Shown: piece after piece, positions 24,787 to 52,485 of the stretch
Layout: every line of letters begins with the position of its first letter
Numbering within the stretch: position 1 is the stretch's first letter
Assembly (NCBI GenBank): GCA_028826165.1
Contig: JAPDFW010000069.1
Location: 372,001-436,000 of the forward strand
Source of the DNA: Anaeramoeba ignava BMAN
Lineage: Eukaryota > Protista > Anaeramoebae
DNA: 64,000 nt
Direction: 5' to 3'
Notes under the pieces: model-generated
Told to the model about the DNA's origin: nothing
Database searches by the model: none
Seen by the model: the letters and a program-made list of their open reading frames with translations, nothing else
Position numbers and translations under genes: made by a program

Positions 24787-26560
24787 ATGAATGAAATTTT
24801 ATTTTTTGGCTCAAATCAAAATCCAAAACTTTTTAAAAATGAACCAGAAATAATAACAAAACCAATTCAATTTAAATTTGAAAATGAAAATGAAAATGAA
24901 AAACAAATTAAACAAATTTCAACAAGTTTTTTTTCAACAATTTTCCTGTTTAAAAATGGAAAAGCAATAGAATATTTAAATGAAAATTATTCAAAACAAA
25001 AATCCTGAAAAAATCCAAATTGAAGAAAATATTCAAAAAGTAACTGTTAGTTCTGGAAATGAAGCTATTTTAACAAAAGAAGGAAATGCATTTGCAAAAG
25101 GATACAATATTAATCCAAAAAATCCAAATGAACTTATCAATATTTCATCATTAATTGAAGATACAAATGATAGAGTAATTCAAGATATTATTTCTGGAAA
25201 CAATTCAATTTACTTATTAACTTCAAATCATAATGCTTATGGAATTGGTTCAAATCAATATTTTCAACTTGGTTTTGATTCTAGAACACTTCCAAAAATA
25301 GAAAAACCAATTTTAATGATGAAAAATGTTTCTAAAATATTTTCAGGAATTGATTCAAAACATGCTTTTCTTTTAAATTCAAATCAAGAATTATTTGGAT
25401 GCGGATATAATGAATATGGTCAAATTGGATTAGGAGAATCAAGAAAACAAGAAATAAAAATCCATAAATTAACCAAAATCCAAAATATTCCAAAAGGCAA
25501 AATAATTGATATTCAAACAGCATGGTTTCATTCAATAATGTTGATTGAAATTGAAAATGAAAATGAAAATCCAAAAAGAAAACTTTATTCATGTGGATAT
25601 TATCCATTTAATGGACTTGGCAAAGATGAAAATACTTATGAATTTACTGAAATCAAATCATCTTTATTTGAAAATGATTATATTCTTGAAATTTGTGTTG
25701 CGTATGATCATAATTCGGTTTTAACATCCAAAGGGAAATTAATAGGATTTGGAGATAATTTTTCAGGTCAATTAGGAACTGGAGATACAAATAATCAATT
25801 AATTCCAATTCAAATTGAACTTCCTAAATTAAGATTTAATGAAGATATTTCTAATTATCATATTTCTTGTGGATATGAAAGATCATTTCTTTATTATTCT
25901 CCTTTTCTTTCTTCTTTTTCCAATCTTGAAGAAGATTTGATAAAATTATTTAGAAGAAAAGAATTTTGCAATATTTCATTTAAAACAGAAAATGGAGAAA
26001 TAATTGAAGCTCATAAATTAATATTGAAATATAGATTAAATCAAAATCAAAATGAAATTGAAAAACTTAAAGAAATTATTTCAAAAAAATCAATTAAAGA
26101 ATCAAATCAAATATTTGAAATGATTTATTCAAATAATTCCAAAATAAATCCAAAATTATATTCTGAAATTAAAGAAATTATAAATTCCAATGAAAAAATT
26201 GAAGAAACAATGAAAAGAATTTATTTAAATGAAAATGAAAAAGATTTTATTATTGAAAGAAAAGAAAAACAATATAAATTTCCTAAATTAATATTAATAA
26301 TGAGAAGTGAATTATATCGAGGAATGTTTTTATCTGTAACTGAAGATAAATCTAATAAAGTTACAGATTATAGTGAATTAAGTAATAAATCATTTCAAAT
26401 ATTTGAATATTGGATTTATTCAAATCAAATTAAAGAAGATATCCAAATTACACAAGAAATTATTGATGAAATTGAAATTGGAATTGATTATTTTCAATTA
26501 AATCAAACAAATCCAAATTTATTTGATTTATTAATTAAGAAATTTAATAATCAAAATTAA
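24787..26560 (+). CDS. RCC1-like beta-propeller + tandem BTB protein, copy 1 (frameshift near 25000)
   Basis: G.N..GQLG RCC1 repeats; BTB motifs FCNISF...EAHKLIL and KDFII...FPKLILIMRSELYRGMF...YWIYSN; extra A in run 24998-25002 relative to paralogues. Confidence 0.85.
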
Positions 26561-26781
26561 AATTAAAATTAAAATTAAAATTAAAATTAAAATTAAAATT
26601 AAAATTAAAATTAAAATTAAAATTAAAATTAAAATTAAAATTAAAATTAAAATTAAAAATTAAAATCAAAATTAAAATTAAAATTAAAATCAAAATTAAA
26701 ATTAAAATTAAAATCAAAATTAAAATCAAAATTAAAATTAAAATTAAAATTAAAATTAAATTTAATATTTTTTTCATGCTT

Positions 26782-29700
26782 TCATTTTAAAATCAAATCT
26801 ATTATGGAATTCTGATTTAATTGATAATAATCTTTTAAATCTTCAAATTCATCTTTGTCGATTTCTTTTTTGTTATCAAATTTATCATGATAAAGGAAAT
26901 AAATTAATTGGTTTATTGTTTGAAATGATTTTCTTGAATAATCATGAACTTGATTAGATGAATCCTCAACACTTAAAAACATTCCTTTAAATAAATCGCT
27001 TCTTATTATCAAAATCAATTTGTGAACCTTAATTTCTTTTTCTTCACAAATGATTGTAAAATCTTTTGATGATTCTTGTTGAAACAATTTCTCAAAATCT
27101 TTTAAAATTCCTTTTCTTCCTTTTTTGTTTTCAATCCATTTTGAATCAAATCCAACTTCTTTAAAGAATTCTTCACATATTGATAGTTTTTCAAACCAAT
27201 TTTCCAATATAACTTTTTCTTGATCAAGATCTAAGTAATTGTAAGAAATTTCCACAAATCCTCTTTTATTTTCGGTAATTTGAATCAATTTATTCTGGAG
27301 TTTGTCAAAATCCAAGAATCCTGTATAAAGAAAATTTAAAGCAATTTCAACATCTTCTTTGGGTTTTTGTTGGCAAATATCGATAAATTTTTGTAAAGTA
27401 AATGCACTATTATCAAATCTTGTTAATAAAATTAATTTATGAGTATGAAATTTGAAAAAGTCTTTTGACCGAATTTGTTGATCTGAAAAATTTTCTGTCG
27501 ATTTAAAAAATTTATTTAAATCTTCATTAATTGAATGGAATTGAAAGAATAATTCAACAAATTTTTTAGAAATGTGAGATTTTTTTAAATCATATATATT
27601 TGCTCCATTTTTCAATAAAAATTTTACAGTTTTCATTTCCCAATTTACATTTTGAATTATTAATGAAAGAGGTGTTTCATTATTATTTGTTTTAGAATTA
27701 ATATCAATTCCTTTTTCAATTAGATATTTGATAATATCAATTGATATATTATTATTTTTGCAAGCATAATGTAAAATTGTTTCATTATTATTTGTTTTAG
27801 AATTAATACCAACACCTTTTTCAATTAGATATTTGATAATATCAATTGATATATTATCATTTCTGCAAGCATAATGCAAAGATGTTTCATTATTATTTGT
27901 TTTAGAATTAATATCAATTCCTTTTTCAATTAGATATTTGATAATATCAATTGATATATTATCATTTTTGCAAGCATAATGTAAAATTGTTTCATTATTA
28001 TTTGTTTTAGCATTAATATCAATTCCTTTTTCAATTAGATATTTAATAATTTCAATTGATATATTATTATTTTTGCAAGCATAATGCAAAGGTGTTTCAT
28101 TATTATTTGTTTTAGAATTAATATCAACACCTTGTTCAATTAGATATTTGATAATATCAATTGATATATTATCATTTTTGCAAGCATAATGCAAAATTGT
28201 TTCATTATTATTTGTTTTAGAATTAATATCAATTCCTTTTTCAATTAGATATTTGATAATATCAATTGATATATTATCATTTTTGCAAGCATAATGTAAA
28301 ATTGTTTCATTTCTGTTTGTTTTAGCATTAATATCAATTCCTTTATCAATTAGATATTTAATAATATCAATTGATAGATTGTTATTTTTGCAAGCATAAT
28401 GTAAAATTGTTTCATTATTATTCTTTGTTTTCTCATTAATATCAGCTCCTTTATCAATTAGATATTTGATAATTTCCAATGTGCTTTTTTGACAGGCAAG
28501 ATGTAAAGGAGTCTCTTTTATGTAGCGAGCTTTGGAATTAATATCAATTCCATTCTCAATTAGATATTTAATAATATCAATTGATATATTATTATTTTGT
28601 AAAGTATAATGTAAGGCTGTTTTGTTGTTAGATGATTTCTCATTAATATCAATTCCTTTTTCAATTAAATATTTGATAATATCAATTGATATATTATTAT
28701 TTCTGCAAGCATAATGCAAAGGTGTTTCATTATTGTTTGTTTTAGAATTAATATCAATTCCTTTTTCAATTAGATATTTAATAACATTAATTGATATATT
28801 TATTATTTCTGGCACAAATAATGCAAAGGTGTTTCATTATTATTTGTTTTAGAATTAATATCAATTCCTTTTTCAATTAGATATTTAATAACATTAATTG
28901 ATATATTTATTATTTCTGGCACAAATAATGCAAAGGTGTTTCATTATTATTTGTTTTAGAATTAATATCAATTCCTTTTTCAATTAGATATTTAATAATA
29001 TCAATTGATATATTTGGATTATGGCACAAATAATGCAAAATTGTTTCATTATTCTTTGTTTTCTCATTAATATCAGCTCCTTTATCAATTAGATATTTGA
29101 TAATTTCCAATGTGCTTTTTTGACAGGCAAGATGTAAAGGAGTCTCTTTTTTATACCTAACTTTGGCATTAATATCAGCTCCATTCTCAATTAAGTATTG
29201 GATAATCTCAAATGAATTTCTCTGACAAGCAAAATGCAAAGCAGTCTCTTTTTTATTTGTTTTCTCATTAATTTCAGCTCCATTTTCAATTAAGTATTTA
29301 ATGACTGGAAACGAGGAATTAGTTTGACAAACAAAATGCAAAGCAGTCTCTTCATTACTTGTTTTCTCATTGATTTCAGCTCCATTTTCAATTAAGTATT
29401 TAATGACTGGAAACGAGGAATTAGTTTGACAAGCAAAATGCAAAGCAGTCTCGTTTTTTTTGGTTTTTAGAGATGCATTAACGCCATTCTCAATTAGATA
29501 TTTAATCGTTTCAAATGATGGATTGTTTTGGCAAGCCAAATGCAAAACAGTTTCATTGTTAATGGTTTTGGAATTAATATCAAATCCTTTTGAAATGAAA
29601 TATTTGAGAACTTGACTAGAATAATTTTGACAAGCAAAGTGCAAAACTGTCGCATATCTAGATGTTTTTGCATTTATATCGGCTCCTTTTTCAATGAGAT

Positions 29701-30772
29701 ATTTAACAACTTCAAATGAATTAAGTTGGGAAGCAATATGCAAACTTGTGGTATTATTTAACTGAGAAAATTGGGATGTGTGAATTTTAGCATTAATATC
29801 AATTCCCATTTCAAGCAAATACCCCAAAACTTCAGGTGAATTCTTTTGGGAAGCAAAATGCAATGGTGTCAGACCATAATTTGTTTTTGTATTCATATCA
29901 GCTCCTATTGAAATCAAATACTTGATATTTTCAAGTGAATTTGCTTTGCAAGCAAAATGTAAAGGGGTTTGATTTTCATTTGTTTTTGCATTGACATCAA
30001 GCCCTTGTTGAAACAAATATTCAAGAACTTCTCGTGAATTATTTTGACATCCATAATGAAAAATCGAGTGATTATCATTTGATTTTGAATTGATATCAAA
30101 TCCCTCAGAAACTAAAAACTTAATAACTTCAAGTGAATTGGATTTGCAAGCAAAATGTAAAGCTGTTTCTTTATAGTTTGTTTTTGCATTAATATCTACT
30201 CCTTTGGAAACTAAAAACTGGATCACTTGAATGGAATTCTTTTTACAGGCATAATGCAAAGGTGTTTTAGTTTGATTATCTTTTTCATGAGCATTAAGCC
30301 CTTTAGAAATCAAAAATTCAATCATTTCAATCGACTGATATTGGCAAGCAAAATGCAAAGCTGTTTGATTATCAATTGTTTTTGCATGAATATCGGCTCC
30401 TTTCTCCTCAAGAAAATGTGTTATTTTGATCGCTTCATTTGGTTTTAAATGAATCATTGCTAAATGAATAACTGTTTTCTTTTTATAATCACATGAATTA
30501 ATTGAAACTCCTTTTGAAATTAATAAATCAATTATTTCAATTTTTGGATTGTTCATGATCGTGCTATGTAATGAATTTCTTGCTGACTTATCAAGTAAAT
30601 TTAGTTTTGCTCCTTTTTCAATTAATTTCTCAATCATTTCTTTTGAAACTTTTTTTTCTATTGCAAAATTTAAAATGGGTTTTTGATCTTTTTCTAAATC
30701 ATTTTCTTCAATTGAATTAATTTCTAACAATAATTCTATTTTATTTTCTTCAATGATATTCCAAATATTCAT
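26782..30772 (-). CDS. Intronless ankyrin-repeat (about 30 repeats) + tandem BTB protein, frame broken at 28800-28915
   Basis: ORFs 30772-28910 and 28815-26782 share the same ETxLHYAC..N.SI.IIKYLI.KG.DIN repeats; C-terminal HKLIL and KDFTI...VHKLIL..RSDLFKGMF BTB pair. Confidence 0.85.
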
Positions 30773-30849
30773 TTTGTTTTTAAAATTGAAAAAAAAAATG
30801 AAAATGAAAAAAAGAAAAAAAATTTTTTTCATTTTTTACTTTTTAAAAA

Positions 30850-32717
30850 ATGAATGATTGTATATTTTTTGGTATAAATCATTATCCAAAACTTTTAAAA
30901 AATGAACCAGAAGAAATAACAAAACCAATTCAATTTAAATTTGAAAATGAAAATGAAAATGAAAATGAAAATGAAAATGAAAATGAAAATGAAAAGCAAA
31001 TTAAACAAATTTCATCAAGTTATTTTTCAATAATTTTCCTTTTTGAAAATGGAAAAGCAATAGAATATTTAAATGAAAATTATTCAAATCAGAATCCTTC
31101 AAAAATCCAAATTGAAGAAAATATTCAAAAAGTAACTGTTGATTATGCAAATGAAGCTATTTTAACAATAGAAGGAAATGTATTTGCTAAAGGAAATAAT
31201 ATTAATCCAAGAAATCCAAAAGAATTTATCAATATTTCATCATTAATTGAAGATACAAATGATAGAGTAATTGAAGATGTTGTTTCTGGTGCTAATTCAA
31301 TTTATTTATTAACTTCAAATCAAAATGCTTATGGAATTGGTGATAATGAATTAGGTCAACTTGGTTTTGATTATGAAACACTTGAAAAACACAAAAACCA
31401 ATTTTAATGATGAAAAATGTTTCTAAAATATTTTCAGGAAATGCTTCAAATCATGTTTTTCTTTTAAATTCAAATCAAGAATTATTTGGATGCGGAAATA
31501 ATAGCCATGACCAACTTGGATTAGGAGAATCAATAAGAAAAGAAAGAAAAATCCCAAAATTAACCAAAATCCAAAATATTCCAAAAGGCAAAATAATTAA
31601 TATTCAATGTGGATCTTATCATTCAATAATGTTGATTGAAAATCAAAATCAAAATCCAAAAAGAAAACTTTATTCATGTGGTTATTCCGGATTCAATGAA
31701 CTTGCCCAAGATGAACATAATTATGAATTTACTGAAATCAAATCATCTTTATTTGAAAATGATAATATTCTTGATTTTTCTGTTGGAAATTCTCATACTT
31801 TGATTTTAACTTCTAATTCAAAATTAATAGGATTTGGAAGTAATTTTTATGGTGAATTAGGAACTGGAGATAAAAAAGAATATCAATCAATTCCAATTCA
31901 AATTGAACTTCCTAAATTAAGATTTAAAGAAGAAATTTCTAATTATCATGTTTCTTGTGGAAATGAAAATTCATTTATTTATTATTCTCCTTTTCTTTCT
32001 TCTTTTTCCAATCTTGAAGAAGATTTGATAAAACTATTTGAAAGAAAAGAATTTTGTAATATTTCATTTAAAACCAAAAATGGAGAAATAATTGAAGCTC
32101 ATAAATTAATATTGAAATATAGATTAAATCAAAATCAAGATGAAAATCAAATTGAAAAACTTGAAGAAATTATTTCAAATAAATCAATTAAAGAATCAAA
32201 TCAAATATTTGAAATGATTTATTCAAACAGAATTATAAATCCAAAATTATATTCAGAAATTAAAGAAATTATAAATTCAAATGAAAAAATTGAAGAAACA
32301 ATGAAAAGAATTTATTTAAATGTAAATGAAAAAGAAAAAGATTTTATAATTGAAAGAGAAGAAAAACAATATAAATTTCCTAAATTAATATTAATAATGA
32401 GAAGTGAATTATATCGAGGAATGTTTTTATCTGTAAAAGAAGATACTTCTAATAAAGTTACAGATTATAGTGAATTAAGTAATAAATCATTTCAAATATT
32501 TGAATATTGGATTTATTCAAATCAAATTAAAGATGAAATTCAAATTACACAAGAAATTATTGATGAAATTAAAATTGGAATTGATTATTTTCAATTAAAT
32601 CAAACAAATCCAAATTTATTTGATTTATTAATTAACAAATTTAATAATCAAAATCCAAATCACAAAAACAAAGAAAAAATTCAAAAAGAAAAAAAAAATA
32701 AATGTTTAATTTTTTAA
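30850..32717 (+). CDS. RCC1-BTB-BTB copy 2 with polybasic + CaaX tail (frameshift near 31387)
   Basis: Near-identical scaffold to copy 1; one A missing in run 31385-31389; ends KEKKNKCLIF*. Confidence 0.85.
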
Positions 32718-32805
32718 AAGAAATTATTGATGAAATTAAAAAAGGAATTGATTATTTTCAATTAAATGAAACATATCCGAATTTATTTGATTTATTAATT
32801 AATAA
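32718..32805 (+). pseudogene. Orphan fragment duplicating the RCC1-BTB 3' end
   Basis: KEIIDEIKKGIDYFQLNETYPNLFDLLIN repeats the last BTB helix directly after the copy 2 stop. Confidence 0.7.
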
Positions 32806-32885
32806 TTCAGAAGCACTAAAATCATCAAAAATAGTTCCAAAATTAAAAAAAATTTTTTTCATTTTTTTCATTTTTTTTCATTAAA

Positions 32886-34662
32886 ATGAATGATTGTTTA
32901 TTTTTTGGTTACAATCTATATCCAATTCTTATAAAAAATGAACCAGAAATAATAATAAAACCAATTCAATTTAAATTTGAAAATGAAAATGAAAATGAAA
33001 ATGAAAAACAAATTAAACAAATTTCATCAGGAGATTTTGGAACAATTTTCCTTTTTGAAAATGGAAAAGCAATAGAATATTTAAATGAAAATGATCCAAA
33101 TCAAAATCCTTCAAAAATCCAAATTTGAAGAAAATATTCAAAAAGTAACTGTTGGTTCTTCTAATGAAGCTATTTTAACAAAAGAAGGAAATGTATTTGC
33201 AAAAGGATATGCTATTAATTCAAAAAATCCAAATGAATTTATCAATATTTCATCATTAATTGAAGATACAAATGATAGAATAATTGAAGATATTATTTCT
33301 GGAGTTGATTCAATTTACTTATTAACTTCAAATCAAAATGTTTATGGAATTGGTTCAAATATATTTGGTCAACTTGGTTTTAGATTATGAAACACTTCCA
33401 AAAACAGAAAAACCAATTTTAATGATGAAAAATGTTTCTAAAATATTTTCAGGAAATACTTCAAATCATGTTTTTCTTTTAAATTCAAATCAAGAATTAT
33501 TTGGATGCGGGAATAATAACTATCTTCAACTTGGATTAGGAGAATCAATAAAAGAACAAATAATTCAAAAATTAACCAAAATCCAAAATATTCCAAAAGG
33601 TAAAATAATTGATATTCAATGTGGAGAATTACATTCAATAATGTTGATTGAAAATGAAAATGAAAATGAAAATTCAAAAAGAAAACTTTATTCATGTGGA
33701 GATTATATTTATAATGGACTTGGAAAAACTGAACATAGTTATGAATTTACTGAAATCAAATCATCTTTATTTGAAAAAGATGATAATATTCTTGATTTTT
33801 CTGTTGCATATGAACATACTTTGATTTTAACTTCCAAAGGCAAGTTAATCGGATTTGGATATTCTGATTTTGGTCAATTAGGAACTGGAGATACAAAATA
33901 TCAATCAATTCCAATTCAAATTGAACTTCCTAAATTAAGATTTAATGAAGAAATTTCTAATTATCATATTTCTTGTGGTGGTAATAAATCATTTCTTTAT
34001 TATTCTCCTCCTTTTTTTCCAATCTTGAAGAAGATTTGATAAAACTATTTAGAAGAAAAGAATTTTGCAATATTTCATTTAAAACCGAAAATGGAGAAAT
34101 AATCGAAGCTCATAAATTAATATTAAAATATAGATTAAATCAAAATGAAAATCAAATTGAAAAACTTCAAGAAATTATTTCAAATAAATCAATTAAAGAA
34201 TCAAATCAAATATTTGAAATGATTTATTCAAACAGAATAATAAATCCAAAATTATATTCTGAAATTAAAGAAATTATAAATTCAAATGAAAAAATTGAAG
34301 AAACAATGAAAAGAATTTATTTAAATGAAAATGAAAAAGATTTTATTATTGAAAGAAAAGAAAAACAATATAAATTTCCAAAATTAATATTAATAATGAG
34401 AAGTGAATTATATCGAGGAATGTTTTTATCTGTAACTAATGATACTTCTAATAAAGTTACAGATTATAGTGAATTAAGTAATAAATCATTTCAAATATTT
34501 GAATATTGGATTTATTCAAATCAAATTAAAAATGAAATTCAAATTACACAAGAAATCATTAATGAAATAGAAATTGGAATTGATTATTTTCAATTAAATC
34601 AAACAAATCCAAATTTATTTGATTTATTAATTAGAAAATTTAATAATCAAAATTATAATTAA
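32886..34662 (+). CDS. RCC1-BTB-BTB copy 3 (frameshifts near 33125, 33381, 34015)
   Basis: Four overlapping ORFs reconstruct a full paralogue colinear with copies 1 and 2. Confidence 0.8.
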
Positions 34663-34689
34663 AATTAAAATTAAAATGAAAACGAAAAC

Positions 34690-35420
34690 AAATCTAAAAT
34701 AAATCTAAAATAAATCCAAATCAAATCCAAATCAAATCCAAATCTAAATCAAATCCAAATCAAATCAAATCCAATCCAAATCAAATCCAAAACAAATCTA
34801 AAACAAATCCAATCCAAATCAAATCAAAATCTAAAATCAAATCAAATCCAAAAATCCAAATCAAATCAAATCAAATTCAAATCAAATCAAATCAAATCAA
34901 ATCAAAATCAAATCAAATTTAAATCAAATCAAATCAAATCAAATCAAATCAAAATCAAAATCAAATCAAAATCTAAATTCAAATCAAATTCAAATTAAAA
35001 ATCAAAATAAATCAAATTAAATCAAATCAAATCAAATTCAAAATCAAAAAATCAAATCAAAATCAAAATCAAAATCAAAATCAAATCAAATCAAATTCAA
35101 ATCAAATCCAAAACAAATCTAAATCAAATCAAATCCAAATCAAATCAAATCCAAATCAAATCAAATCAAATCCAAATCAAAATCAAATCAAATCTAAATC
35201 AAATCAAATCAAATCTAAATCAAATCCAAATCCAAATCAAATCCAAATCCAAATCAAATCCAAATCAAATCAAATCCAAATCAAATCAAATCCAAATCAA
35301 ATCCAAATCAAATCCAAATCAAATCCAAATCAAATCTAAATCAAATCCAAATCCAAATCAAATCCAAATCCAAATCCAAATCAAATCCAAATCAAATCCA
35401 AATCAAATCTAAAACAAATT
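34690..35420. repeat. (AAATC/AAATCC)n microsatellite, about 730 bp
   Basis: Mixed 5- and 6-mers; no G on the + strand. Confidence 0.9.
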
Positions 35421-35525
35421 AAAATTAAAATTAAAAAGATAAAAAAAGCAAAAAAAAGTTTTCATTTTTTTTCTTTCATTTTTTTCTTTTTAATTTACAA
35501 GAATATAAAAAAAAATAATTTAAAA

Positions 35526-41000: not shown

Positions 41001-43388
41001 ATGTTAGACTAATTAATGTATTTATTTTTAAAATATTGTCAATATAATTATTATTTTTCTCATTTAAAAATATTTCATTTTCTTAATTTACCCACTTAAA
41101 TAAACAAAAAATCATTTTTGTACATTTAATTCACACAATAATAAATAAATTTGAATTTTGATTTGTTTATTTACCAACTAATATAAAATTAATTTTTACA
41201 ATACAAATTTAATCCAAAAAAAAATAGGGAATAATAATTTTAATTTTGATTTAGATTTTGGATTTAATTTTAATTTTAATTTTAATTTTAATTTTAATTT
41301 AATTTTGATTTTGAATTTTAATTTTAATTTTAATTTTAATTTTAATTTTAATTTTAATTTTGATTTTAATTTTAATTTTGATTTTGATTTTAATTTTGAT
41401 TTTGATTTTAATTTTGATTTTAATTTTGATTTTAATTTTAATTTTAATTTTAATTTTAATTTTGATTTTAATTTTAATTTTAATTTTGATTTTAATTTTG
41501 AATTAGATTTTGATTTAGATTTTAATTTTGATTTTGATTTTGATTTTGATTTTAATTTTAATTTTAATTTTAAGATTTTAAGAATTTTAATTTTAATTTT
41601 AATTTTAATTTTAATTTTAATTTTAATTTTAATTTTAATTTTAATTTTAATTTTGATTTTGATTTTGATTTTCAATTTTAAACAATTTTGATTTTTTTTG
41701 TTATTTTTTTTAATCAATTTTGAGATTTTGATTTTAATTCATAAAAAGAATTTTTAACAATTTTGATTTTATAAATGAAAATTTTATCCAAAATAAATAA
41801 TTTTTAATCAAAATTTTAAGAAAAAGAAAAATTTTATTTTAATTTTAAATAAAATCAAATTTAAAAAGAAATAATTTAGGAATCATTTTTATTTTTTCTT
41901 CAAAGAGATTTTTACATTTTTCAAACCAGAAATTTCATTTTAATTAAAAAGGTTTAATCTTTTCTGATTTTTTTTAATTTTATTTAACATTTTAAATTTT
42001 GGGATTTTGTTTTTTTTAAAAATAAAGAATAAAAACAAAAATAATTTCCTTTTTTTATAAATTGACATTCAAGAGAAAACATGGAAAATTTTTAATCAAA
42101 TTTTTATTTCCTAATTTTCCATTTTTTTAAATTTTAATCAAAACAAAAATAAAAATAAATCAAAATTAAAAAAGAAAAATTATTTACACCCTAAATAAAA
42201 TCAAAAATATCTAAATAATTGGGGAATCATTTTATATTTTTCTTCAAAGAGATTTACATTTTCGAACTGAAATTTCATTTTTCTAAAAAGGTTTAATCTT
42301 TCTGGATTTTTGAAATTAAATTAAATTTGAAATAAATTAAAAATTAAATTAAAATTAAAAATGTTTCCTTTTATAAATTTCACAAGAAAACATGGAAAAT
42401 TAAAATCAATTTAAACCTGAAATAATTTGAAATTTTAAATTTTAAATCAAATTGAAAATCAACAGAATTAAAAAAAATACAATTGAAATTTGTAAAGAAT
42501 CAGCTCCCTTATCTATTAATAATTGGGGAATTTGAAAACTTTCGGAACAATGTTGAACTGCATAAAAAAGTGGAGATTCATTCTTAAAATTTGAAATGAA
42601 TTGAATTGAAATAAATTAAAATTGAAATAAATTAAAATTTGAAATGAAATAAATTGAAATAAATTAAAATTGGAATTGAATTGAAATTTGAAATTGGATT
42701 AAATTGAAATAAATTAAAATTTGAAATTGAATTGAAATTTGAAATTGGATTGAAATTGAAATAAATTAAAAATACTCTCTATCAAAAAAGAAAAATAAGT
42801 TTTCAATTTAAATTCAATAAATTAAGGAAGGGTTTATTTTTATAGAAATTGATTTACATTCTAAAAATATAATGAAATCATAAATATTTTTCTTTTTGAA
42901 ATTAATTTTTGATTTTACATTTGAAATTTTTGGATCTGCTCCTCTTTCTAATAATAAACGAACAACTTCAAGTTTTTCATCATAACGGCAAGCATAAAAT
43001 AAAGCAGTAGAATTTGAAGTCTTTTGTTTTTGTTTTTGTTTTTATTTTTATTTTTATTTTTATTGAATTAAAAATCTAAAAATAAAAAATGATATTTTTT
43101 TACATCAACTTCATTCACATCAACTCCAGAATCAAGAATAGCTTTAATTACTTGTAAAGATTGATTAGAAGAAACAGCATACATTAATACTGGTATTTCA
43201 TACTTAAAAAAAAAGAAAAGAAAAAAAAGAAAAAGAAAAAAAGAAATTAAAATCAATTTGCTTTTTTTTTGTTGTTTTAAAATTTTATTTACAATTTTTA
43301 TTTTTGCAAGAGAAGGTTTTCTTCTTAATAAATCAAGAATTTGTTTTTCCTTTCTTTCATTAAGATATTTTATGAATTGTTTAGACAT
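38054..43388 (-). CDS. Ankyrin-repeat (about 12) + tandem BTB protein, 14 main exons plus up to 11 micro-exons
   Basis: Main exons 43388-43293, 43202-43104, 43020-42919, 42582-42481, 41008-40913, 40693-40598, 40281-40159, 40089-39991, 39908-39819, 39673-39581, 39425-39327, 39165-39070, 38966-38859, 38792-38054. All introns are phase 0 GT-AG; internal exons are each about one ankyrin repeat. BTBs SAHKFIL and VHKWVLIARCGLFRGMF; +1 frameshift near 38340. Confidence 0.85.
39235..40353 (-). other. Micro-exons CGA (40353-40351), GAA (39751-39749), AAAAAA (39513-39508), AATGAA (39240-39235)
   Basis: Each has AG and GT flanks; give DK-R-GTSLL, LLD-E-QGNTAF, NAKN-KK-GNNVL, NEHN-NE-ELTPL. Confidence 0.78.
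40760..40840 (-). other. Two 3-nt micro-exons: GAT (40840-40838, Asp) and CAA (40762-40760, Gln)
   Basis: gatag|GAT|gttagt, aaaag|CAA|gtaaaa; split a 219-nt gap into 72, 75 and 66-nt introns; give INQLN-D-Q-NETPL. Confidence 0.8.
41092..42190 (-). other. Candidate 3-nt micro-exons GGT (42190-42188), TTG (41177-41175), TGG (41094-41092)
   Basis: tttag|GGT|gtaaat, attag|TTG|gtaaat, ttaag|TGG|gtaaat; canonical spacing needs only one codon at this junction. Confidence 0.6.
42776..42860 (-). other. Two 3-nt micro-exons: AAT (42860-42858, Asn) and AGA (42778-42776, Arg)
   Basis: ttttag|AAT|gtaaat and gatag|AGA|gtattt; give GAD-PKISN-N-R-NE-SPL, the canonical 9-residue ankyrin linker. Confidence 0.75.
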
Positions 43389-43521
43389 AAAAATAAAAAT
43401 AAAATAAAAATAAAAAATAAGAAAATGAATGAGAAAAAAATGAATTTGGGTTTTTATTTTGTTTTTTTTTTTTTGAGTGAGAAAAGAATAACAAAATAAA
43501 ATGAGAAGAATGAATTAAAGT

Positions 43522-45342
43522 TTAATTTGAATTGAGATTTTCCATTGCTACTTTATTAACATCACCATTAAATTTGATAAGTAATTCCTTATTCTTTTCA
43601 GTATTAGCAAAACCCATATCAACAAGTAGCTTTAATTGCTTTTCAAAAGCAAAAGAATTTGGATCATTTGGTTCTGAAATTGGAACTTTTTCAAGATCTT
43701 GAAGAGAGGATTCAACTTGAATAATAATCCAAATACGATGACCAAAACGAGAACCGTCTTTGCGACAAACGCGATAGTAGCCTGTGTATCTTCCAGGATT
43801 TGAGGGTGCTTTGAACTTCATAAAAATATCAGCAGATTCACTGGGTTTGAGTTGAGGAATTTCAACAATATCATCATTAAGTCTGAAATCATCACCACCA
43901 ACAAAATCAAGTGAACAACCTTCTTCCCATTCTGAAGTTCCATCGTTCCTGATGCGCCAACCTTTCTCGAATTCTTGGTTGGGTTCGAATTTATCTTCAT
44001 CATTAACAAGTAAGTGTTGAACAAATCGAACGGTTAGTTTGGGAGGTTTTGGGATTTTTGGATTTTTCCGATTTAAGCCTCTTCCTCGAAATTTGTATGA
44101 ACAATCGTGACAAAAACCAGTTGAATTTGAATTTGGAGTTGAATTTGAATTTAAATTTAAATTTAAATTTTGATTGTGGTTTGTGGAGTGTTGTTGTGGA
44201 GGAGGCATAAATGAGGAGAAAGGTGATTGAGGAGGCATAAAATTAAAGGGTGGATTGACATGAGGAGGAATATAGGATTGTGTTGGATCAAAATTGGGTG
44301 TGAAAGGAAAACCTTGTCCGAATCCTCCCATTCCCATCATTCCATTTCCTCGACGGTTGTGATGATATGGTGGATGTGGATGTGGATGTGGATGTGGATG
44401 TGGATGTGGATGTCCGCCTCCAAAAAATGGTGGGAATTTTTTGAAAGAATTTGGAGGAATGTTTTGTATAAAATTATAAGGATTGAATTGCATGTTTGTT
44501 GGTATTTGGAATTCGGATACAAAATGTTTGGGGAAATTATTTGTTTCTTTTTGTGTTGGGTTGTTTTCTTGTGTTTTTTGTTCTTCTTCTGGTGGGAATG
44601 GAATTATTTTTGTGAAATTTTCGCACAATCCTTTGAGATTTAGTTCGCTAACTGAAGTGATAATTTTGCTCAATGATTTTATTCTTTCTGCGATTTGTTG
44701 AGCAACAAATCCAATTTTCAATTTTGTTTCTTCTTTGATTTCAATAAATTTATCTTGAGCATAAATATCTTGGACAAACTTGACAAAATCTTGAGAACTT
44801 TTTTCAGCATTTTGGAACAAATTGATTAATTCTGCGATTAGTTTAGATTTGACTCTGTAAAACCATTGAACAAGATTATAATCTTGCATTAGATCATAAA
44901 CAGTATTCCAAGCTTGTTTCAAGCCGTCAAAAAGACTAAAAGAAGGGATGTTGTTTTGAGTATCAGAAAATTGGTCTTCAGTTTGCTTATTGAAATAATC
45001 ATTATCATCATTATTGCTGTCATTTCCTTTTAGCTTGCTCTGCTTGTCATTCTCTTCATCATCTCTTTGGCTGTCATTTGCTTTAGCTTCAATAAAGATC
45101 CGAAGAACATGATTATTTGCTTGTTCTAAAAGTTGAATAGCTTCTTTTAATTCCATTGTTGATGTTAATGTAATATAATCCATTTCGTTATCTTGATATT
45201 TTACAACATAATCATCCATGTTAATTTTGTAAATTTGACAAAGAAGGTTACAAAGATCTTCGAAGGTTGAATTTTTTGTTATTGAAACACGTCGAATATC
45301 TTGTTTGAATTTAGATTTGATTTCAATTTTTTCAGAAGTCAT
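43522..45342 (-). CDS. NBR1: NBR1-like selective autophagy receptor (PB1 - FW/NBR1 domain - UBA)
   Basis: PB1 (KSKFKQDIRR...KYQDNEMDYITL), FW domain (FEKGWRIRNDGTSEW...APSNPGRYTGYYR...FGHRIW), UBA (LKLLVDMGF...N..LL..FNGDV). True start likely MTSEK at 45342. Confidence 0.85.
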   Translation of the reverse strand: MTSEKIEIKSKFKQDIRRVSITKNSTFEDLCNLLCQIYKINMDDYVVKYQDNEMDYITLTSTMELKEAIQLLEQANNHVLRIFIEAKANDSQRDDEENDKQSKLKGNDSNNDDNDYFNKQTEDQFSDTQNNIPSFSLFDGLKQAWNTVYDLMQDYNLVQWFYRVKSKLIAELINLFQNAEKSSQDFVKFVQDIYAQDKFIEIKEETKLKIGFVAQQIAERIKSLSKIITSVSELNLKGLCENFTKIIPFPPEEEQKTQENNPTQKETNNFPKHFVSEFQIPTNMQFNPYNFIQNIPPNSFKKFPPFFGGGHPHPHPHPHPHPHPPYHHNRRGNGMMGMGGFGQGFPFTPNFDPTQSYIPPHVNPPFNFMPPQSPFSSFMPPPQQHSTNHNQNLNLNLNSNSTPNSNSTGFCHDCSYKFRGRGLNRKNPKIPKPPKLTVRFVQHLLVNDEDKFEPNQEFEKGWRIRNDGTSEWEEGCSLDFVGGDDFRLNDDIVEIPQLKPSESADIFMKFKAPSNPGRYTGYYRVCRKDGSRFGHRIWIIIQVESSLQDLEKVPISEPNDPNSFAFEKQLKLLVDMGFANTEKNKELLIKFNGDVNKVAMENLNSN

Positions 45343-45695
45343 TGTTTTTGTGTTTGATTTTTTTTTTTTTAATAAAAAAAAAATTTTATAAAAAATAAAA
45401 AATAAAAAGAAATAAAAAGAAAAATAAAAAGATAAAGTGAATTGAAATATAAGTAAATTTAAAAAGAAAAAAAGAAAAAAAAAAAAAAGAATCAAATAAA
45501 GTATGTAAAAAAAAAAATAAAATGAAAAAGAAAAAAATGAAAAAATTAAAATGGGAAAAAAAAATTTTTTTTATTTAAATTAATAAGAGTTCTCAATTTT
45601 ATAATAATTAAAAAAAAAAAAGGAGAAAAAAAAATAAAATTAAAAATAAAAAGGAGAAAAAATTTTTTTTCATTTTTTTTTTCATTTTTTTCATA

Positions 45696-46382
45696 ATGTC
45701 AATTGAAGCTTTAAATAAAATTAATCAACAAATTGAAGATTTATCAAAAGAATTAAATTTAGATTATAAACCAAATTTAGTTGCAATTTCTAAAACAAAA
45801 CCAAAAGAATCAATTTTAATACTTTATGAATCAGGACAAAAACATTTTGGAGAAAATTATGTTCAAGAAATAATTGAAAAGGCAAAAGAATTACCTAAAG
45901 ATATTAAATGGCATTTTGTTGGGCATTTACAATCAAACAAAGCAAAATCACTTGTTCAACTTGATAATTTATATGTTATTGAAACTATTGATACAATTAA
46001 ACTAGCAAAAATTCTTAACAAATTATTGGCTCAGCAAAAAAGAACATTGAATATCATGATTCAAGTTGATATTAGTCATGAAGGTACAAAATCTGGTTGT
46101 TCTGAAAATGATTTACCTGATTTAACTAAATTTATTTTGGAAAAGTGTCCAAATTTAAAGTTAATTGGATTAATGTCTCTTGGAAATCCAAATTCAATTG
46201 AAGAATTTGAACAAATGAAAAAATTAAAAGCTCAACTTATTGAAAAGTTTGAAATTGATAAGAATCAATTTGATTTAAGTTTTGGTACTTCTCAAGATTT
46301 TGAAGAAGCAATTAAACATGGATCTAATAGTGTTAGAATTGGAACAACATTATTTGGGCCTCGAGCATGCAAAAAGAAGTGA
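45696..46382 (+). CDS. PLPBP: Pyridoxal phosphate homeostasis protein (YggS/PROSC)
   Basis: LVAISKTKP, FGENYVQE, WHFVGHLQSNK, VRIGTTLFG. Confidence 0.95.
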   Translation: MSIEALNKINQQIEDLSKELNLDYKPNLVAISKTKPKESILILYESGQKHFGENYVQEIIEKAKELPKDIKWHFVGHLQSNKAKSLVQLDNLYVIETIDTIKLAKILNKLLAQQKRTLNIMIQVDISHEGTKSGCSENDLPDLTKFILEKCPNLKLIGLMSLGNPNSIEEFEQMKKLKAQLIEKFEIDKNQFDLSFGTSQDFEEAIKHGSNSVRIGTTLFGPRACKKK

Positions 46383-46651
46383 AATTTTAAATTTTAAATT
46401 TTGATTTTGATTTTGATTTTGATTTTGATTTAAATTTTGATTTTTGATTTTGATTTAAATTTTTAAGTTTAAATTAGTTTTTGATTTAAAATTTGGTTTT
46501 AAAATTTGGATTTAAAATTTGAAACGTTAATGAAATGATTAAAAAAAAAATAAAAACAAAAGATCCGTTAATTTTTCTTTTTTATTTTTTTTCAATAAAT
46601 TTTTTTTTTCATTTTTTTTCTAATTTCATTTAAATAATTTTTATATATATA

Positions 46652-49600
46652 ATGACAACTGAATTAACAAGAAAATTAATTGATTCAAGTCAAAATAATT
46701 TAGATTCTTTCATTTCTTTTATGGTTAAATTAAAAACACCTTTAAAAGAAATGATCCAAACTTTAAATAAAAGATCTTCAATGAAAATTTGGGAAAATTT
46801 AAATCATTTATTCAATAAAATTATTCAAGAAAATTTATACATCTTTGACACAAATATCCAAAATAGAATTCATTATTTAAAAGGATTATTTCATTTAGCG
46901 ACGCTGATTGAAAGTTTTCTTGAAGAAAAAAAGCAATTTCTTCCAAATGCTTGTTTTGAAATGATTGTTGGATTGCATGATTCCATATTCTTAATGAGAC
47001 AAGAAAGAAAAAATGATCCAATTTCTTATTCAACACCAACAAAAAAACAAGAAAAAAATGAAACAAATGAAAATGAAAATGAAAATGAGAATGAAAATGA
47101 AAATGGAAAGGAGAATACAATGGAAATTGAAATACAAAATGAGGATTTATCAAAAGACCAATTGGATAACTTAATCGAACAAGAAAACTCTAAAATTCTT
47201 CTTTTCCAAGAAAAAGTGGTTCAAATTTGTGAGAAGTATTATCTCCTCGAAAAAGAAGAACGAGAACGAATTGTTCCACAAATGATTTCTTATTTAGTTT
47301 TGGTTTCACTTGATCTCTCAGCAAAACCAGCACATATTAAAAGACTTTATAGCACAAGAAGTTCACTTTTATTACTTGATTTTTCAGATGAAAGCACAAC
47401 ATGGTTGAAAAATTTACTTCTTCGCTGTTTCATTTCTCCACTCTTCCTGAAGACAGAGGAAGGCAAAAAGTTTCTGGTTTATCTTTTTGGATTATATCCA
47501 CCTTTTATTGACCAAATACATGCTACAATCAAGAATCAACTTCCCGTATCAAGTTCTGCAATAATTGATATTTTTGGAGAAATTTATTTCAAAGCTTGGA
47601 AAATGGCTGTTTCTTCGTACAGAGTCAGAATCGAGTATTCCTGCATCCAAGATCTTATGAATCATGCGATTCATGCATCAACTCCAAAGATGACAAAGGT
47701 TCTTCATCAACTTCTTTCCAAAATTCACACACAAAAAAATTTCAGAGGAGTTGATGAAATGCTTCTCCGGTTATACGAACCGATTCTTTTCAGATCTCTT
47801 AATGTTTCAAATCCATTGGTTAGGAAAAACGCAGCACTACTTTTAATTGATGCGTTTCCTCTCCAAGATCCAGACTCTTTACACGAAGAAATTGATCAGA
47901 TCCTGCAAATCCAATTTGATCATCTCACAAACCTTATGACTGATTCATGTGTTCCTGTTCGTTCTGTTGCTGTTCAAGGTGTTTGCCGAATTTTAAGCAT
48001 ATTCTGGGAACTTATCCCTTCAGAGATTTCCCAGTCTTTCCTCAACCTAATATTCCATGATCTGATCTATGATAAATCTTCTTCGTCTTTTCGAGTCGCA
48101 GTCATAAAAGGCATTTCTTATTTGCTTGATTCACACTTGGTGCAGACGAGTCTGAAGAAGTTTCTCCCTTCGATCCGTTCTATGATTAATGACAAAGTGG
48201 AAAGTGTGCGTTTGGCATTTATACACTTGCTGATCCAAATCAAGAACTTGAGGTTCATCAAATTCTATGAGGTTGTTCCGTTGAAATTCTTGCTTTATCG
48301 GTTAGCAAAAGATAATATCTTTGCGAGCCAACAAGGATATCCAAATCAGTTATCTGTAGGTGAATCTATAAAGAAGATCAATTCAAATGCAGACAAGATT
48401 GGAGAAAGAATCACTTCGTTGCTTTTGAGTACTTATTTTCCCCATGAAACCCATCATGGTTCTGAGCTGATATATCGCTGTTTGCGTTTGATGAAGAAGA
48501 ATATTGTTGCTGCCAAAATATTCTTTTATTATCTTACAAGAGTTGCTCCTTTAGATTCAATTTGCAGACTTGTAATCTTGTTCATGAAGATACTCGACAG
48601 ATGCTATAACACCAAAATGATGGGAGCTGAACAAAGTTTCCTTGATGTTCTCAAATCCACAAGAAATTCAACTAAACCAAACCAAGAACAAGAACAAGAA
48701 CAAGAACAAAATGATCAAGAAAAAGAAAAAGAAAAAGAACAAAATGATCAAAAGAAATCAAAGAAACGAAAATCAAAACGCAAAAAGTCGAAAGAAGAAC
48801 GAAAACGCGAAATTGAACCTTCTTATAAAGAATTTGAATTTGAATTTGAACCCCAAATTTTGCACATTGTTTCGATTCTTGTTGAAGGAATCGAACCATC
48901 AATATCTGACAAGAAGAATAAGAAACTAAAAGACTTCTTATCAAACGTGTTCAACAATTCTTTTCTTTCAGATTTCTATGATGCTTTTCCTTCAGCATTG
49001 ACTCATTCATCCATTTTGAAAATTGTATCTTTTCATTCAGACTCCTCAGTAATCGATATTTCAATATCAAAAATCAAAGATCTCCCAAACCAAGATTTCT
49101 CAAAGCTTCCGCTATATTATCAAGATGAGGTTTATTACGGTTCTCTTGTGGATTGTCTTGTGAAAAATGGAAAGGAAGTGCTGCTTCTTAATTTGATTCG
49201 TGATTGGATCTTAGAGCCGTTTTCTAGTATGAAAAAAGAAGCTGAAAACGAAAAGAAAGAAAAAACCAAATCCAAAAAGAGAAAATCCAAAGCAAAAAGC
49301 CCAGAGCCGAATACAAGTGCTGAATGGAAAATGCTTGAACAGAAGGCTTTTGTTGCAATCAAATTGTTGGATTATATGATGAAAACTGAAAGTAACCGAA
49401 GAGTTGTTGTAACTCATGATGAAATTTCGGACTTGATTATCGTTCTTCAGCAATACCATCTCATTATAAGCTATCGTATTTCTTCTGAGAAAAACCAAAA
49501 TTTCATTTCAGACGATCTTCTTTTAGAATTATTGCAAGTCGAAGGCAAATCACTCATTTCATTATTCACTCAACTCTCACTTGAACCACTTGATCCAACA

Positions 49601-50638
49601 GAACAATTCGAAGATGAAACTCCGCCAATCTTTCTGAATATTGTCGATTGGTTTTTCCAAGGAATTGTTCCAGCTTTACAAAAAATTAAAGTGCAAAAGA
49701 ATAAAGAACAGAATTCCGATGATATTGAACCAGAAATGATCAACAAAAATTTTGTGGAAAAAATTTCTGAACTTCTCTTTGTTATCATAACAGAAAGTGT
49801 TTCTTTAGGCATTTTGGATAGTAAAACTCGAAATGATATTTCTTCTCATTTCATTAATTTGCTTGAAGATGATCAATCAAATTTATTTATTGATTTTTTT
49901 CTCTCTCGTTTATTAAAGTTATTGTATCAATTAATTTTCAAAGAGATTGATCCACCAAGCAATCAGAATCAAACACAAAAACTGATGTTTTTAATATTTT
50001 CACTTATTCATTCACAACAAAATGAAAATGAAAACGAAAATGAAAACGAAAATGAAAACAAAAACAAAAACAAAAACAAAAATCAAAATATTAATGCAAA
50101 TCTGATGGATTCATTTTTATCGGAAATACTTACACTATTTTTGCAAAGAAACCGATTGAAGTTTATTATGGAAAGTTTTGTTCACTTCATCTTACAAATT
50201 GGTGAGAATAAATTAAATGAAATGGAAAATCAAGATGTTTTCTTTCAAAGTTTTGATGATTTTTCATTTTCAACTTTTTTGATTATGAAAACAATTTTAA
50301 GACGCAAAGATTTCACCAAAAATTTATTATTAAGAATAATACTTCCAATTTTGGAAAATGAACAAACAAAACCTGAACAATTATGGGGTCTAATTCAAAT
50401 TCTTCATTTAATTCAACAAAAGGAAAAAAATCAACAAGATGAATTGAAAAAGAAATTTCCCAACAAAGAATTTAAATTATTTAAATTTCCTGATCAAATT
50501 CTTAATCAATTACAATTAATTCGTGAATATATAAACAATAACAATAATAATGAAAATGAAAATGAAAATGAAAATGAACAAATTAATTTGGAAAATTGTG
50601 TTTCTTTAATGATTGAATCCTTTTTAGATTCAAATTAA
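46652..50638 (+). CDS. NCAPG2: Condensin II complex subunit G2
   Basis: GEIYFKAW, IEYSCIQDLM, GVDEMLLRLYEPILFRSL...NPLVRKNAA.L..DAFPL, VRSVAVQGVCRILS.FWELIP. Confidence 0.9.
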   Translation: MTTELTRKLIDSSQNNLDSFISFMVKLKTPLKEMIQTLNKRSSMKIWENLNHLFNKIIQENLYIFDTNIQNRIHYLKGLFHLATLIESFLEEKKQFLPNACFEMIVGLHDSIFLMRQERKNDPISYSTPTKKQEKNETNENENENENENENGKENTMEIEIQNEDLSKDQLDNLIEQENSKILLFQEKVVQICEKYYLLEKEERERIVPQMISYLVLVSLDLSAKPAHIKRLYSTRSSLLLLDFSDESTTWLKNLLLRCFISPLFLKTEEGKKFLVYLFGLYPPFIDQIHATIKNQLPVSSSAIIDIFGEIYFKAWKMAVSSYRVRIEYSCIQDLMNHAIHASTPKMTKVLHQLLSKIHTQKNFRGVDEMLLRLYEPILFRSLNVSNPLVRKNAALLLIDAFPLQDPDSLHEEIDQILQIQFDHLTNLMTDSCVPVRSVAVQGVCRILSIFWELIPSEISQSFLNLIFHDLIYDKSSSSFRVAVIKGISYLLDSHLVQTSLKKFLPSIRSMINDKVESVRLAFIHLLIQIKNLRFIKFYEVVPLKFLLYRLAKDNIFASQQGYPNQLSVGESIKKINSNADKIGERITSLLLSTYFPHETHHGSELIYRCLRLMKKNIVAAKIFFYYLTRVAPLDSICRLVILFMKILDRCYNTKMMGAEQSFLDVLKSTRNSTKPNQEQEQEQEQNDQEKEKEKEQNDQKKSKKRKSKRKKSKEERKREIEPSYKEFEFEFEPQILHIVSILVEGIEPSISDKKNKKLKDFLSNVFNNSFLSDFYDAFPSALTHSSILKIVSFHSDSSVIDISISKIKDLPNQDFSKLPLYYQDEVYYGSLVDCLVKNGKEVLLLNLIRDWILEPFSSMKKEAENEKKEKTKSKKRKSKAKSPEPNTSAEWKMLEQKAFVAIKLLDYMMKTESNRRVVVTHDEISDLIIVLQQYHLIISYRISSEKNQNFISDDLLLELLQVEGKSLISLFTQLSLEPLDPTEQFEDETPPIFLNIVDWFFQGIVPALQKIKVQKNKEQNSDDIEPEMINKNFVEKISELLFVIITESVSLGILDSKTRNDISSHFINLLEDDQSNLFIDFFLSRLLKLLYQLIFKEIDPPSNQNQTQKLMFLIFSLIHSQQNENENENENENENKNKNKNKNQNINANLMDSFLSEILTLFLQRNRLKFIMESFVHFILQIGENKLNEMENQDVFFQSFDDFSFSTFLIMKTILRRKDFTKNLLLRIILPILENEQTKPEQLWGLIQILHLIQQKEKNQQDELKKKFPNKEFKLFKFPDQILNQLQLIREYINNNNNNENENENENEQINLENCVSLMIESFLDSN

Positions 50639-50701
50639 AATTAAAAAAAATTTTTTTATTTTTATTTTTGATTAATTTCATTTTTTTATTTTCCAAAAAA
50701 A

Positions 50702-52485
50702 ATGAATGATATTTTCTTTTTTGGTGAAAATAAGCCTTTATTTTATCCAAATCAACCTCTTAAAATAATAAAACCAATTCAATTTAAATTTGAAAATGAA
50801 ACACAAATTAAACAAATTTCAACAGGTCAATTTGCAACAATTTTTCTTTTTAAAGATGGAAAAGCAATTCAATATTTAAAAGAAGAAAAAGATTTAAAAC
50901 AAAATATTGAAAAAATCCAAATTGAAGAAAATATTCAAAAAGTAACTGTTGGTTGGAGAAATGAAGCTATTTTAACAATAGAAGGAAATGTATTTGCAAA
51001 AGGAAAAGATATTAATTCAGAAAATCCAAATGAATTTATCAATATTTCATCATTAATTGAAGATAAAAATGATAGAATAATTGAAGATATTGTTTGTGGT
51101 TCAAGTTCAATTTACTTATTAACTTCAAATCAAAATGCTTATGGAATTGGTTCAAATTATTATGGCCAACTTGGTTTTCAAATTGCAAAAAAAGAAGAAA
51201 AACCAATTTTAATGATGAAAAATGTTTCTAAAATATTTTCAGGAAATTATTCAACTTCTGTTTTTCTTTTAAATTCAAATCAAGAATTATTTGGATGTGG
51301 ATATAACTTTTTTGGAAGACTTGGAATAAAAACGTTAGAAGGACAGTTTATTGGTAAATTAACCAAAATCCAAATATTCCAAAAGGTAAAATAATTGATA
51401 TTCAAATAGCATGGTTTCATTCAATAATGTTGATTGAAGATGAAAATGAAAATGAAAATCCAAAAAGAAAACTTTATTCATGTGGATGTTATCATTATAA
51501 TGGACTTGGACAAAATGAAGATGTGAATGAGTTTACTGAAATCAAATCATCTTTATTTGAAAATGATAATATTCTTGATTTTTCTGCAAGAGGAAATCAT
51601 ACTTTGATTTTAACTTCCAAAGGGAAATTAATCGGATTTGGAAGTAATTTTTCAGGTCAATTAGGAATTGAAAAGATAGAAAAACAAAATTTTCCAATTC
51701 AAATTGAACTTCCTAAATTAAGATTTAATGAAGATATTTCCAATTATCATGTTCATTGTGGACTTGAAAGATCATTTCTTTATTATTCTCCTTCTTTTTC
51801 CAATCTTGAAGAAGATTTGATAAAACTTTATCAAAGAAAAGAATTTTGTAATATTTCATTTAAAACCGAAAATGGAGAAATAATTGAAGCTCATAAATTA
51901 ATATTGAAATATAGATTAAATCAAAATCAAAATGAAATTGAAAAACTTCAAGAAATTATTTCAAAAATAAATCAATTCAAGAATCAAATCAAATATTTGA
52001 AATGATTTATTCAAATAATTCCAAAATAAATCCAAAATTATATTTAGAAATTAAAGAAATTATAAATTCAAATGAAAAAATTGAAGAAACAATGAAAAGA
52101 ATTTATTTAAATGAAAAAGAAAATGAAAAAGATTTTATAATTGAAAGAAAAGAAAAACAATATAAATTTCCAAAATTAATATTAATAATGAGAAGTGAAT
52201 TATATCGAGGAATGTTTTTATCTGTTACAGAAGATACTTCTAATAAAGTTACAGATTATAGTGAATTAAGTAATAAATCATTTCAAATATTTGAATATTG
52301 GATTTATTCAAATCAAATTAAAGAAGGAATTCAAATTACACAAGAAATAATTAAAGAAATTGAAACTAGGAATCGATTATTTTCAATTAAATCAAACAAA
52401 TCCAAATTTATTTGATTTATTAATTAACAAATTTAATGATGAAAAGAAGAAGAAAAATGAAAAAGAGAATTGTTTAATTTTTTAA
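50702..52485 (+). CDS. RCC1-BTB-BTB copy 4 with CaaX tail (frameshifts near 51373, 51967, 52368)
   Basis: Three ORFs plus a terminal segment GIDYFQLNQTNPNLFDLLINKFNDEKKKKNEKENCLIF* ending 52485. Confidence 0.8.

Follow-up and report, generated by a model that had tools for sequence, protein, structure and literature searches.

LZTR1, RhoBTB3 and ABTB1 are tandem-BTB adaptors of CUL3; LZTR1 couples a propeller to its BTB domains and RhoBTB3 has a CaaX box. All three are single-copy and none is hypervariable. IBTK/Btb1 and RCBTB1/2, which have RCC1 repeats followed by one or more BTB domains, are low-copy conserved genes (PMC4447969, PMC4974088). The F-box genes and the MATH-BTB genes of nematodes and plants form large and unstable families that combine a constant domain of the cullin-docking type with a diversified substrate-binding domain, and passages in the literature on these expansions hypothesise a role in pathogen defence on indirect evidence (PMC1866355, citing Thomas 2006; PMC8120010). 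Here, we describe four intronless genes on the forward strand of a 64,000-nucleotide stretch of Anaeramoeba ignava DNA (contig JAPDFW010000069.1, positions 372,001 to 436,000, hereafter the window), from an assembly of 42.8 Mb in 147 contigs. They encode an RCC1 propeller followed by two BTB domains and belong to a family that appears to be a heritable stock of binders, which probably hands its targets to a ubiquitin ligase. The family shares with these nematode and plant families its size, its instability and its division into a constant and a diversified part. It differs from them by its binder (an RCC1 propeller on a tandem BTB), by its host (a free-living metamonad), by the presence of more than 1,100 copies at about 90% DNA identity whose variants are almost unlinked, and by a putatively prenylated subset.

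The AlphaFold2 model of an intact paralogue (P0022; predicted local distance difference test, pLDDT, 91) is an RCC1-like propeller of seven four-stranded blades with RCC1 repeats and a 2+2 closure, followed by two BTB domains. Pfam matched both RCC1 and BTB, and Foldseek matched the propeller to RCC1, RPGR and HERC2 (E~1e-25). By topology, the AB and CD loops of the model lie on one face of the propeller (face 1) and the BC and DA loops on the other (face 2). Faces were assigned from strand topology and an alignment with UVR8, not from a three-dimensional distance map; the loop classes were taken from the strands of the model and not from variability, except that three CD-loop starts were set one residue into the preceding strand. 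On face 1, mean entropies were 1.94 bits for AB loops and 1.75 for CD loops (their first five residues); BC loops had 0.42, DA loops 0.25, strands 0.39 and the BTBs 0.19 (face-1 vs face-2 loops, P=2e-16). All 29 positions above 2.5 bits were in AB or CD loops, with none on the opposite face or in the BTBs. The AB and CD loops align to the GWRHT and GW-x-x-GQLG motifs of UVR8, which hold the residues of its dimer or interaction surface (PMC5108777). All 84 copies sampled for this purpose have different faces, and each variable site has its own residue preference.

An earlier note on the window, made from the letters alone, had proposed that short patches, about two per blade, form one variable propeller face on a near-invariant scaffold. 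The two patches per blade were seen across 93–100 paralogues, and the single face was borne out by the topology of the model and by the per-site entropies, since the variable sites are not scattered over both faces. The four 9-mers that it had singled out sit exactly at 25049, 31141, 33154 and 50951 between the flanks claimed, and every patch that it quoted is present in the frame-aligned translations. Other statements were only partly right. The DNA said to be almost identical is so in the BTB half (94–96% among the four copies), not in the RCC1 half (82–89%). Among the residues said to enrich the patches, Y and W are strongly over-represented and S, N and F slightly, whereas G is depleted at variable positions (2.1% vs 5.5%) and flanks them instead.

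The four paralogues of that note are members of a far larger family. Genome-wide, a 22-mer of the propeller had 1,113 matches and a 17-mer of the second BTB 1,267 (one mismatch allowed), with none for reversed-pattern controls. The copies amount to about 2 Mb, such that about 5% of the 42.8-Mb genome of this anaerobic, symbiont-bearing amoeba codes for variants of one binding scaffold. They are dispersed on many contigs as short tandem arrays and singletons. Among 85 sampled copies the median pairwise DNA identity was 90%, the tree was star-like (internal branches make up 14% of its length), and neighbouring copies were hardly closer to each other than distant ones. We rejected a local tandem burst or haplotigs as the origin of the copies, because those of the window resemble one another no more than they resemble copies elsewhere in the assembly, on other contigs, and because identity is above 97% in just 3 of 3,570 pairs. 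Transposon-borne amplification was also rejected: the common sequence consists of the open reading frame (ORF), a short T-rich leader and AAAATT-type repeats. No conserved termini were apparent by eye in 40 flank pairs of family copies.

Over the full length, copy 1 is matched best by its own annotated product (98%), where the annotation omits the stretch around a frameshift. The ~120 matches that follow are without exception A. ignava paralogues, most of them with 81–86% identity. Likewise, all 108 matches of the BTB tail are from A. ignava, as are more distant subfamilies (30–60% identity), some of them fused to ARM repeats. The sole relative identified in A. flamelloides is a distant protein of 1,590 amino acids. 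Judging from these matches, the near-identical family looks species-specific within the databases searched. Four members on other contigs (P0122, P0124, P0126 and P0129) are ARM-repeat-RCC1-BTB fusions with 49–73% identity.

The tail is predicted to form an intramolecular BTB pseudo-dimer (tail model pLDDT 92). It has a BTB/POZ fold, as it is matched by the Pfam BTB profile and its model matches BTBs including that of SPOP (4eoz). Its nearest predicted structures are BTBD7, LZTR1, RhoBTB3 and ABTB1 (template modelling score, TM, 0.67–0.75 for the last three), and its best sequence matches include KBTBD4 and SPOP. The propeller, a separate N-terminal domain with a variable face in the model, is the putative equivalent of the substrate-binding domain of CUL3 adaptors. 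We infer cullin docking because IBTK, RCBTB1 and LZTR1 are related proteins (PMC4447969, PMC4974088): the constant pseudo-dimer would dock one common partner, most likely a CUL3-type cullin. The genome has 7–8 cullin loci, counted without regard to cullin subtype. A tandem pair of near-identical cullin genes (G000:C57:231551-239837) is among them.

Several features of the tail weigh against a cullin as the partner. A 3-box or BACK follows the BTB in most CUL3 adaptors, albeit not in all. In the model there are no such helices after the second BTB: the chain ends after the last BTB helix (578–589), with only a short tail or a CaaX box beyond it, and lacks the BACK or 3-box extension of LZTR1, RhoBTB3 and ABTB1. 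The 3-box is important for high-affinity CUL3 binding (PMC4447969). The phi-x-E site of the alpha3-beta4 loop, aligned to L-K-E of KBTBD4, reads T-x-D (T518 is near-invariant and D520 invariant in the family). Finally, the best match of the whole tail in the PDB is the tethered Miz1-BCL6 dimer, a non-cullin BTB dimer. We did not class the family as adaptors of Cullin-3 RING ligases (CRL3), because the 3-box is missing and CUL3 binding is only inferred. The family also lacks other features of IBTK, namely the N-terminal ankyrins and the substrate-binding C-terminal region of ~500 amino acids (PMC4447969). Orthology with IBTK/Btb1 was rejected for want of ankyrins and of a C-terminal extension.

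A subset of the family ends with a basic stretch and the motif CLIF or CFIF: among 118 proteins there were 16 with this ending, and among 83 DNA copies also 16. Copies 2 and 4 of the window are in this subset. This ending is unlinked to scaffold alleles. The genome has three prenyltransferase beta-subunit genes, and the subset has the sequence features of CaaX proteins, i.e., a CaaX box and a polybasic stretch in a genome encoding prenyltransferases. About 16–19% of the copies have this ending and are probably membrane-anchored.

The most serious alternative, which we nevertheless regard as unlikely, retains a diversified binding repertoire and dispenses with the cullin. The tandem BTB would then act like a dimer and as a hub, where targets are sequestered or sorted or to which a trafficking, autophagy or HECT E3 effector is recruited. 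The missing 3-box, the non-canonical phi-x-E site and the match of the whole tail with a non-cullin dimer all speak for it, and the existence of a CaaX subset hints at membranes. Genes for a HECT E3 and for an NBR1-like protein are present in the window too, but adjacency is no evidence of partnership. On the other hand, the nearest tandem-BTB relatives are mostly known CUL3 adaptors, the phi-x-E site has an acidic residue in its last position that never varies, and the same type of tail is found behind ankyrin and ARM domains, as for a modular adaptor. We favour, with moderate confidence, a germline-encoded repertoire of about 1,100–1,270 cullin-receptor binding proteins.

The copies recombine extensively. 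Among 101 biallelic scaffold sites, the linkage statistic r2 was 0.33 at 1–5 nt, 0.03 at 6–15 nt and 0.012–0.017 beyond (0.014 is expected for unlinked sites). All four gametes were present in ~99% of the pairs of scaffold sites. Complex dimorphisms, whose alleles differ by 3–5 nt, were in linkage equilibrium with each other. Recurrent mutation is an unlikely source of this lack of linkage, since the complex alleles have few intermediates and are unlinked too. As scaffold variants, complex ones included, are unlinked beyond ~15 nt, the family behaves like a recombining pool or population, in which paralogues exchange short DNA tracts. Ten pairs of copies had significant identical tracts of 140–390 nt, several of these pairs being on different contigs, and some pairs have the propeller in common but not the tail. 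When selection acts against gene conversion, one expects the scaffold to be homogenised and divergence, synonymous as well as non-synonymous, to rise in narrow peaks, as at the selected sites of the major histocompatibility complex (MHC), opsins and plant RPP8 NLRs (PMC3924837). The divergence peaks of the family match this signature. Compared with these systems, the family has loci that are more numerous by two to three orders of magnitude and spread over many contigs, and linkage is lost within ~15 nt.

The proportions of non-synonymous and synonymous differences (Nei-Gojobori pN/pS) were 0.52/0.29 at the 29 top sites and 0.26/0.18 in all face-1 loops, against 0.05/0.09 for face 2 and 0.04/0.09 for the BTBs; the pN of variable codons amounts to five times the background pS. 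Tree-based tests of the codeml type were not used, given internal branches of 14% of tree length and four-gamete violations in ~99% of site pairs; the standard test would be confounded because recombination is pervasive. The ratio omega was instead obtained from our own tree-free Dirichlet-multinomial codon approximation, whose values are approximate. It was 0.21 in the BTBs and 0.36 in the rest of the propeller; purifying selection acts on the scaffold and on the tandem BTB. Letting omega exceed 1 under a shared synonymous rate gave a 2dlnL (twice the gain in log-likelihood) of 326 and flagged 46 codons at a posterior probability (PP) above 0.95. Face 1 holds 40 of these and the adjacent edges of D strands the other six, whereas face 2 and the BTBs hold none.

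The residues found at variable positions differ from the outcome of AT-biased mutation: Tyr makes up 17.6% (vs 4.0%), Trp 1.9%, and Ile 1.9% where 16–22% is expected under neutrality. Stops occupy 2 of 2,430 codons, against ~10% expected, and one of the two is an alignment effect of the frameshift in copy 2. Diversifying selection on the variable face, as the earlier note had suggested, is thus supported relative to the gene-wide synonymous rate, by residue composition and by the near-absence of stops, but not by codon-local ratios. When the synonymous rate was left free per site, only 3 codons passed, and the pooled codon-local omega was 1.1, or 0.5 with neutral base frequencies; these two results count against the repertoire that we favour. 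The local omega is about 1 because synonymous diversity also peaks at variable codons. Third positions of Gly codons adjoining a variable codon had a nucleotide diversity (pi) of 0.29, vs 0.08 elsewhere (P=0.0007), which falls to background within 2 codons.

This synonymous diversity, 3–5 times higher in and beside variable codons, might suggest a dedicated mutator (similar to diversity-generating retroelements, DGRs, cDNA-templated, or based on error-prone repair) that targets the loops, selection merely filtering its products. The multi-nucleotide patch changes between close pairs, the intronless genes and the 17 reverse-transcriptase (RT) matches of the genome would fit such a process, and the family is akin to DGRs in displaying hypervariable residues of the ligand-binding type on a constant scaffold. 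We find it improbable all the same. The synonymous excess is gone within 1–2 codons, which is also the scale of linkage. The variable sites lie on one three-dimensional face of the model, have site-specific residue preferences and show no apparent common DNA motif. The variation involves all four bases and every codon position, is not restricted to adenines and has no template, and the best RT matches are in retroelement-like ORFs of 1,100–1,870 amino acids. In contrast with DGRs, there is no adenine-specific mutagenesis, template repeat or linked RT, and the diversity is stored across paralogues; we rejected mutagenesis of the DGR type on codon patterns and RT context. The 17 RT matches are dispersed in the genome and mostly located in long ORFs, several of them in intact ORFs of the sizes given above, and are a possible source of cDNA-mediated exchange between the intronless copies.

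Genomic drift would explain the family by selfish or neutral amplification, with surface loops that are simply unconstrained and many copies that are pseudogenes; there are arguments for similar drift in the F-box genes of plants (PMC3030570). The codon-local omega of about 1 is compatible with this, and 35 of the 85 sampled copies (41%) lack a full ORF in the assembly. Yet, the equally exposed loops of the opposite face are conserved (mean entropy 0.25–0.42 vs 1.75–1.94), pN at variable codons far exceeds background pS, the composition is unlike that of AT-driven neutrality and stops are almost absent. The broken frames themselves cluster at homopolymers: 44 of 51 breaks are at most 8 nt from a homopolymer of at least 4, against a background of 44%, and short-read contigs carry compensating indels. 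We consider drift to be quite improbable, slightly more so than a mutator. None of the sequencing runs on record for the organism is of RNA, which does not help the case for a working repertoire.

Window copies 1 to 4 have respectively 1, 1, 3 and 3 frameshifts. The assembly was made from nanopore reads polished with Pilon (PMC11550330). Each of the three breaks of copy 3 has a compensating indel in short-read contigs, although only the break at 33378–82 is at roughly single-copy short-read depth, the contigs at the other two including paralogues. Given the excess at homopolymers, the Pilon-polished nanopore assembly and these indels, most frameshifts, including those of the four window copies, are probably assembly errors. 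A few may nevertheless be genuine pseudogenes, copy 4 possibly among them. That the mosaic of variable patches is itself an artefact of assembling or polishing a repeated gene, as nanopore data and frequent homopolymer frameshifts could suggest, is highly implausible, because 61–84-nt stretches of copy 3 recur without any difference in short-read contigs, over variable patches as well as the scaffold dimorphisms next to them, and because an artefact would not stay in codon frame, be short of stops or keep to a single face of the structure.

Under the cullin-receptor repertoire that we favour, some 1,100–1,270 cytosolic proteins would bind targets through the variable RCC1 face (about 30–45 codons), and the constant BTB pseudo-dimer would dock a CUL3-type cullin, leading to ubiquitination of the bound proteins. 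Gene conversion or ectopic recombination would homogenise the scaffold and reshuffle loop alleles, while selection would preserve differences on the binding face. More speculatively still, the targets could be fast-changing foreign proteins (effectors of prey or symbionts, viruses, mobile elements), and the prenylated subset could patrol endomembranes, e.g., those of phagosomes or symbiosomes. A bolder version, which we hold to be doubtful, is an antibody-like intracellular repertoire: the more than 1,100 loci would be one panmictic pool in which exchange of very short tracts (possibly cDNA-mediated) keeps reshuffling about 14 loop alleles over an unchanging scaffold, quickly enough for new specificities to arise within cultures, and soluble and membrane-anchored forms would feed a cullin ligase policing prey, viruses or the symbiosome.

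If true, the favoured reading extends the idea of ubiquitin immunity put forward for F-box and MATH-BTB families to a free-living metamonad with a culturable symbiosis, provides an extreme example from nature of selection that opposes gene conversion, and makes of the family a naturally randomised RCC1 binder scaffold with about 30–45 defined positions. The terms RCC1, BTB, cullin and ubiquitin are all absent from the main text of the genome paper, where the family goes unmentioned. A search of the literature on Anaeramoeba with BTB or ubiquitin, and on hypervariable BTB expansions in protists, found no description of the family, with most subscription journals outside its reach.

Table 1. Family copies and other features of the window (positions are those of the window).
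Feature	Position	Strand	Remarks
Copy 1, RCC1(7-blade)-BTB-BTB	24787..26560	+	annotated as KAJ5074752.1 (P0002); +1 frameshift in A-run near 24998; C-terminus FNNQN, no CaaX
Copy 1, variable loops, whole span	25046..25888	+	
Copy 1, loop AB2	25046..25060	+	
Copy 1, loop AB3	25193..25207	+	
Copy 1, loop CD3	25247..25273	+	
Copy 1, loop AB4	25343..25363	+	
Copy 1, loop CD4	25400..25423	+	
Copy 1, loop AB5	25514..25534	+	
Copy 1, loop CD5	25589..25612	+	
Copy 1, loop AB6	25697..25714	+	
Copy 1, loop CD6	25751..25771	+	
Copy 1, loop AB7	25868..25888	+	
Copy 1, tandem BTB tail, near-invariant	25913..26560	+	predicted intramolecular BTB pseudo-dimer; T-x-D around 26339-26347; no 3-box
Copy 2	30850..32717	+	-1 frameshift in A-run near 31385; polybasic stretch and CLIF CaaX box at C-terminus
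Copy 3	32886..34662	+	single-base frameshifts near 33124, 33378-82 and 34013; no CaaX
Copy 4	50702..52485	+	frameshifts near 51372, 51963 and 52367; polybasic stretch and CLIF CaaX box at C-terminus
Ankyrin-repeat and tandem-BTB gene	26782..30832	-	tandem ankyrin units of 99-105 nt; split by single-base frameshifts near 28815-28910
Degenerate duplicate of BTB-tail 3' end	32717..32830	+	short; likely recombination scar
HECT E3 ligase	11053..15318	-	
Ubiquitin-like-domain NIF phosphatase	21788..22792	-	
NBR1-like protein	43522..45495	-	PB1 and Ig-like domains
A+T tract	4513..6928		GC 2-4%; tandem array, units of ~144-146 bp
A+T tract	16700..19900		GC 2-4%; tandem array, units of ~144-146 bp
A+T tract	about 52500..56000		GC 2-4%

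The four window genes are listed in Table 1; copy 4 is the most divergent among them. The ankyrin gene lying between copies 1 and 2 has in its second BTB the motif GMFLSV..D.SN.V.DYS in common with the RCC1 family, which suggests that the two have a common partner. The short duplicate of the tail is located between copies 2 and 3. The proximity of the HECT E3, NBR1-like and NIF phosphatase genes to copies of the family is probably a coincidence. Three tracts of the window are almost pure A+T.

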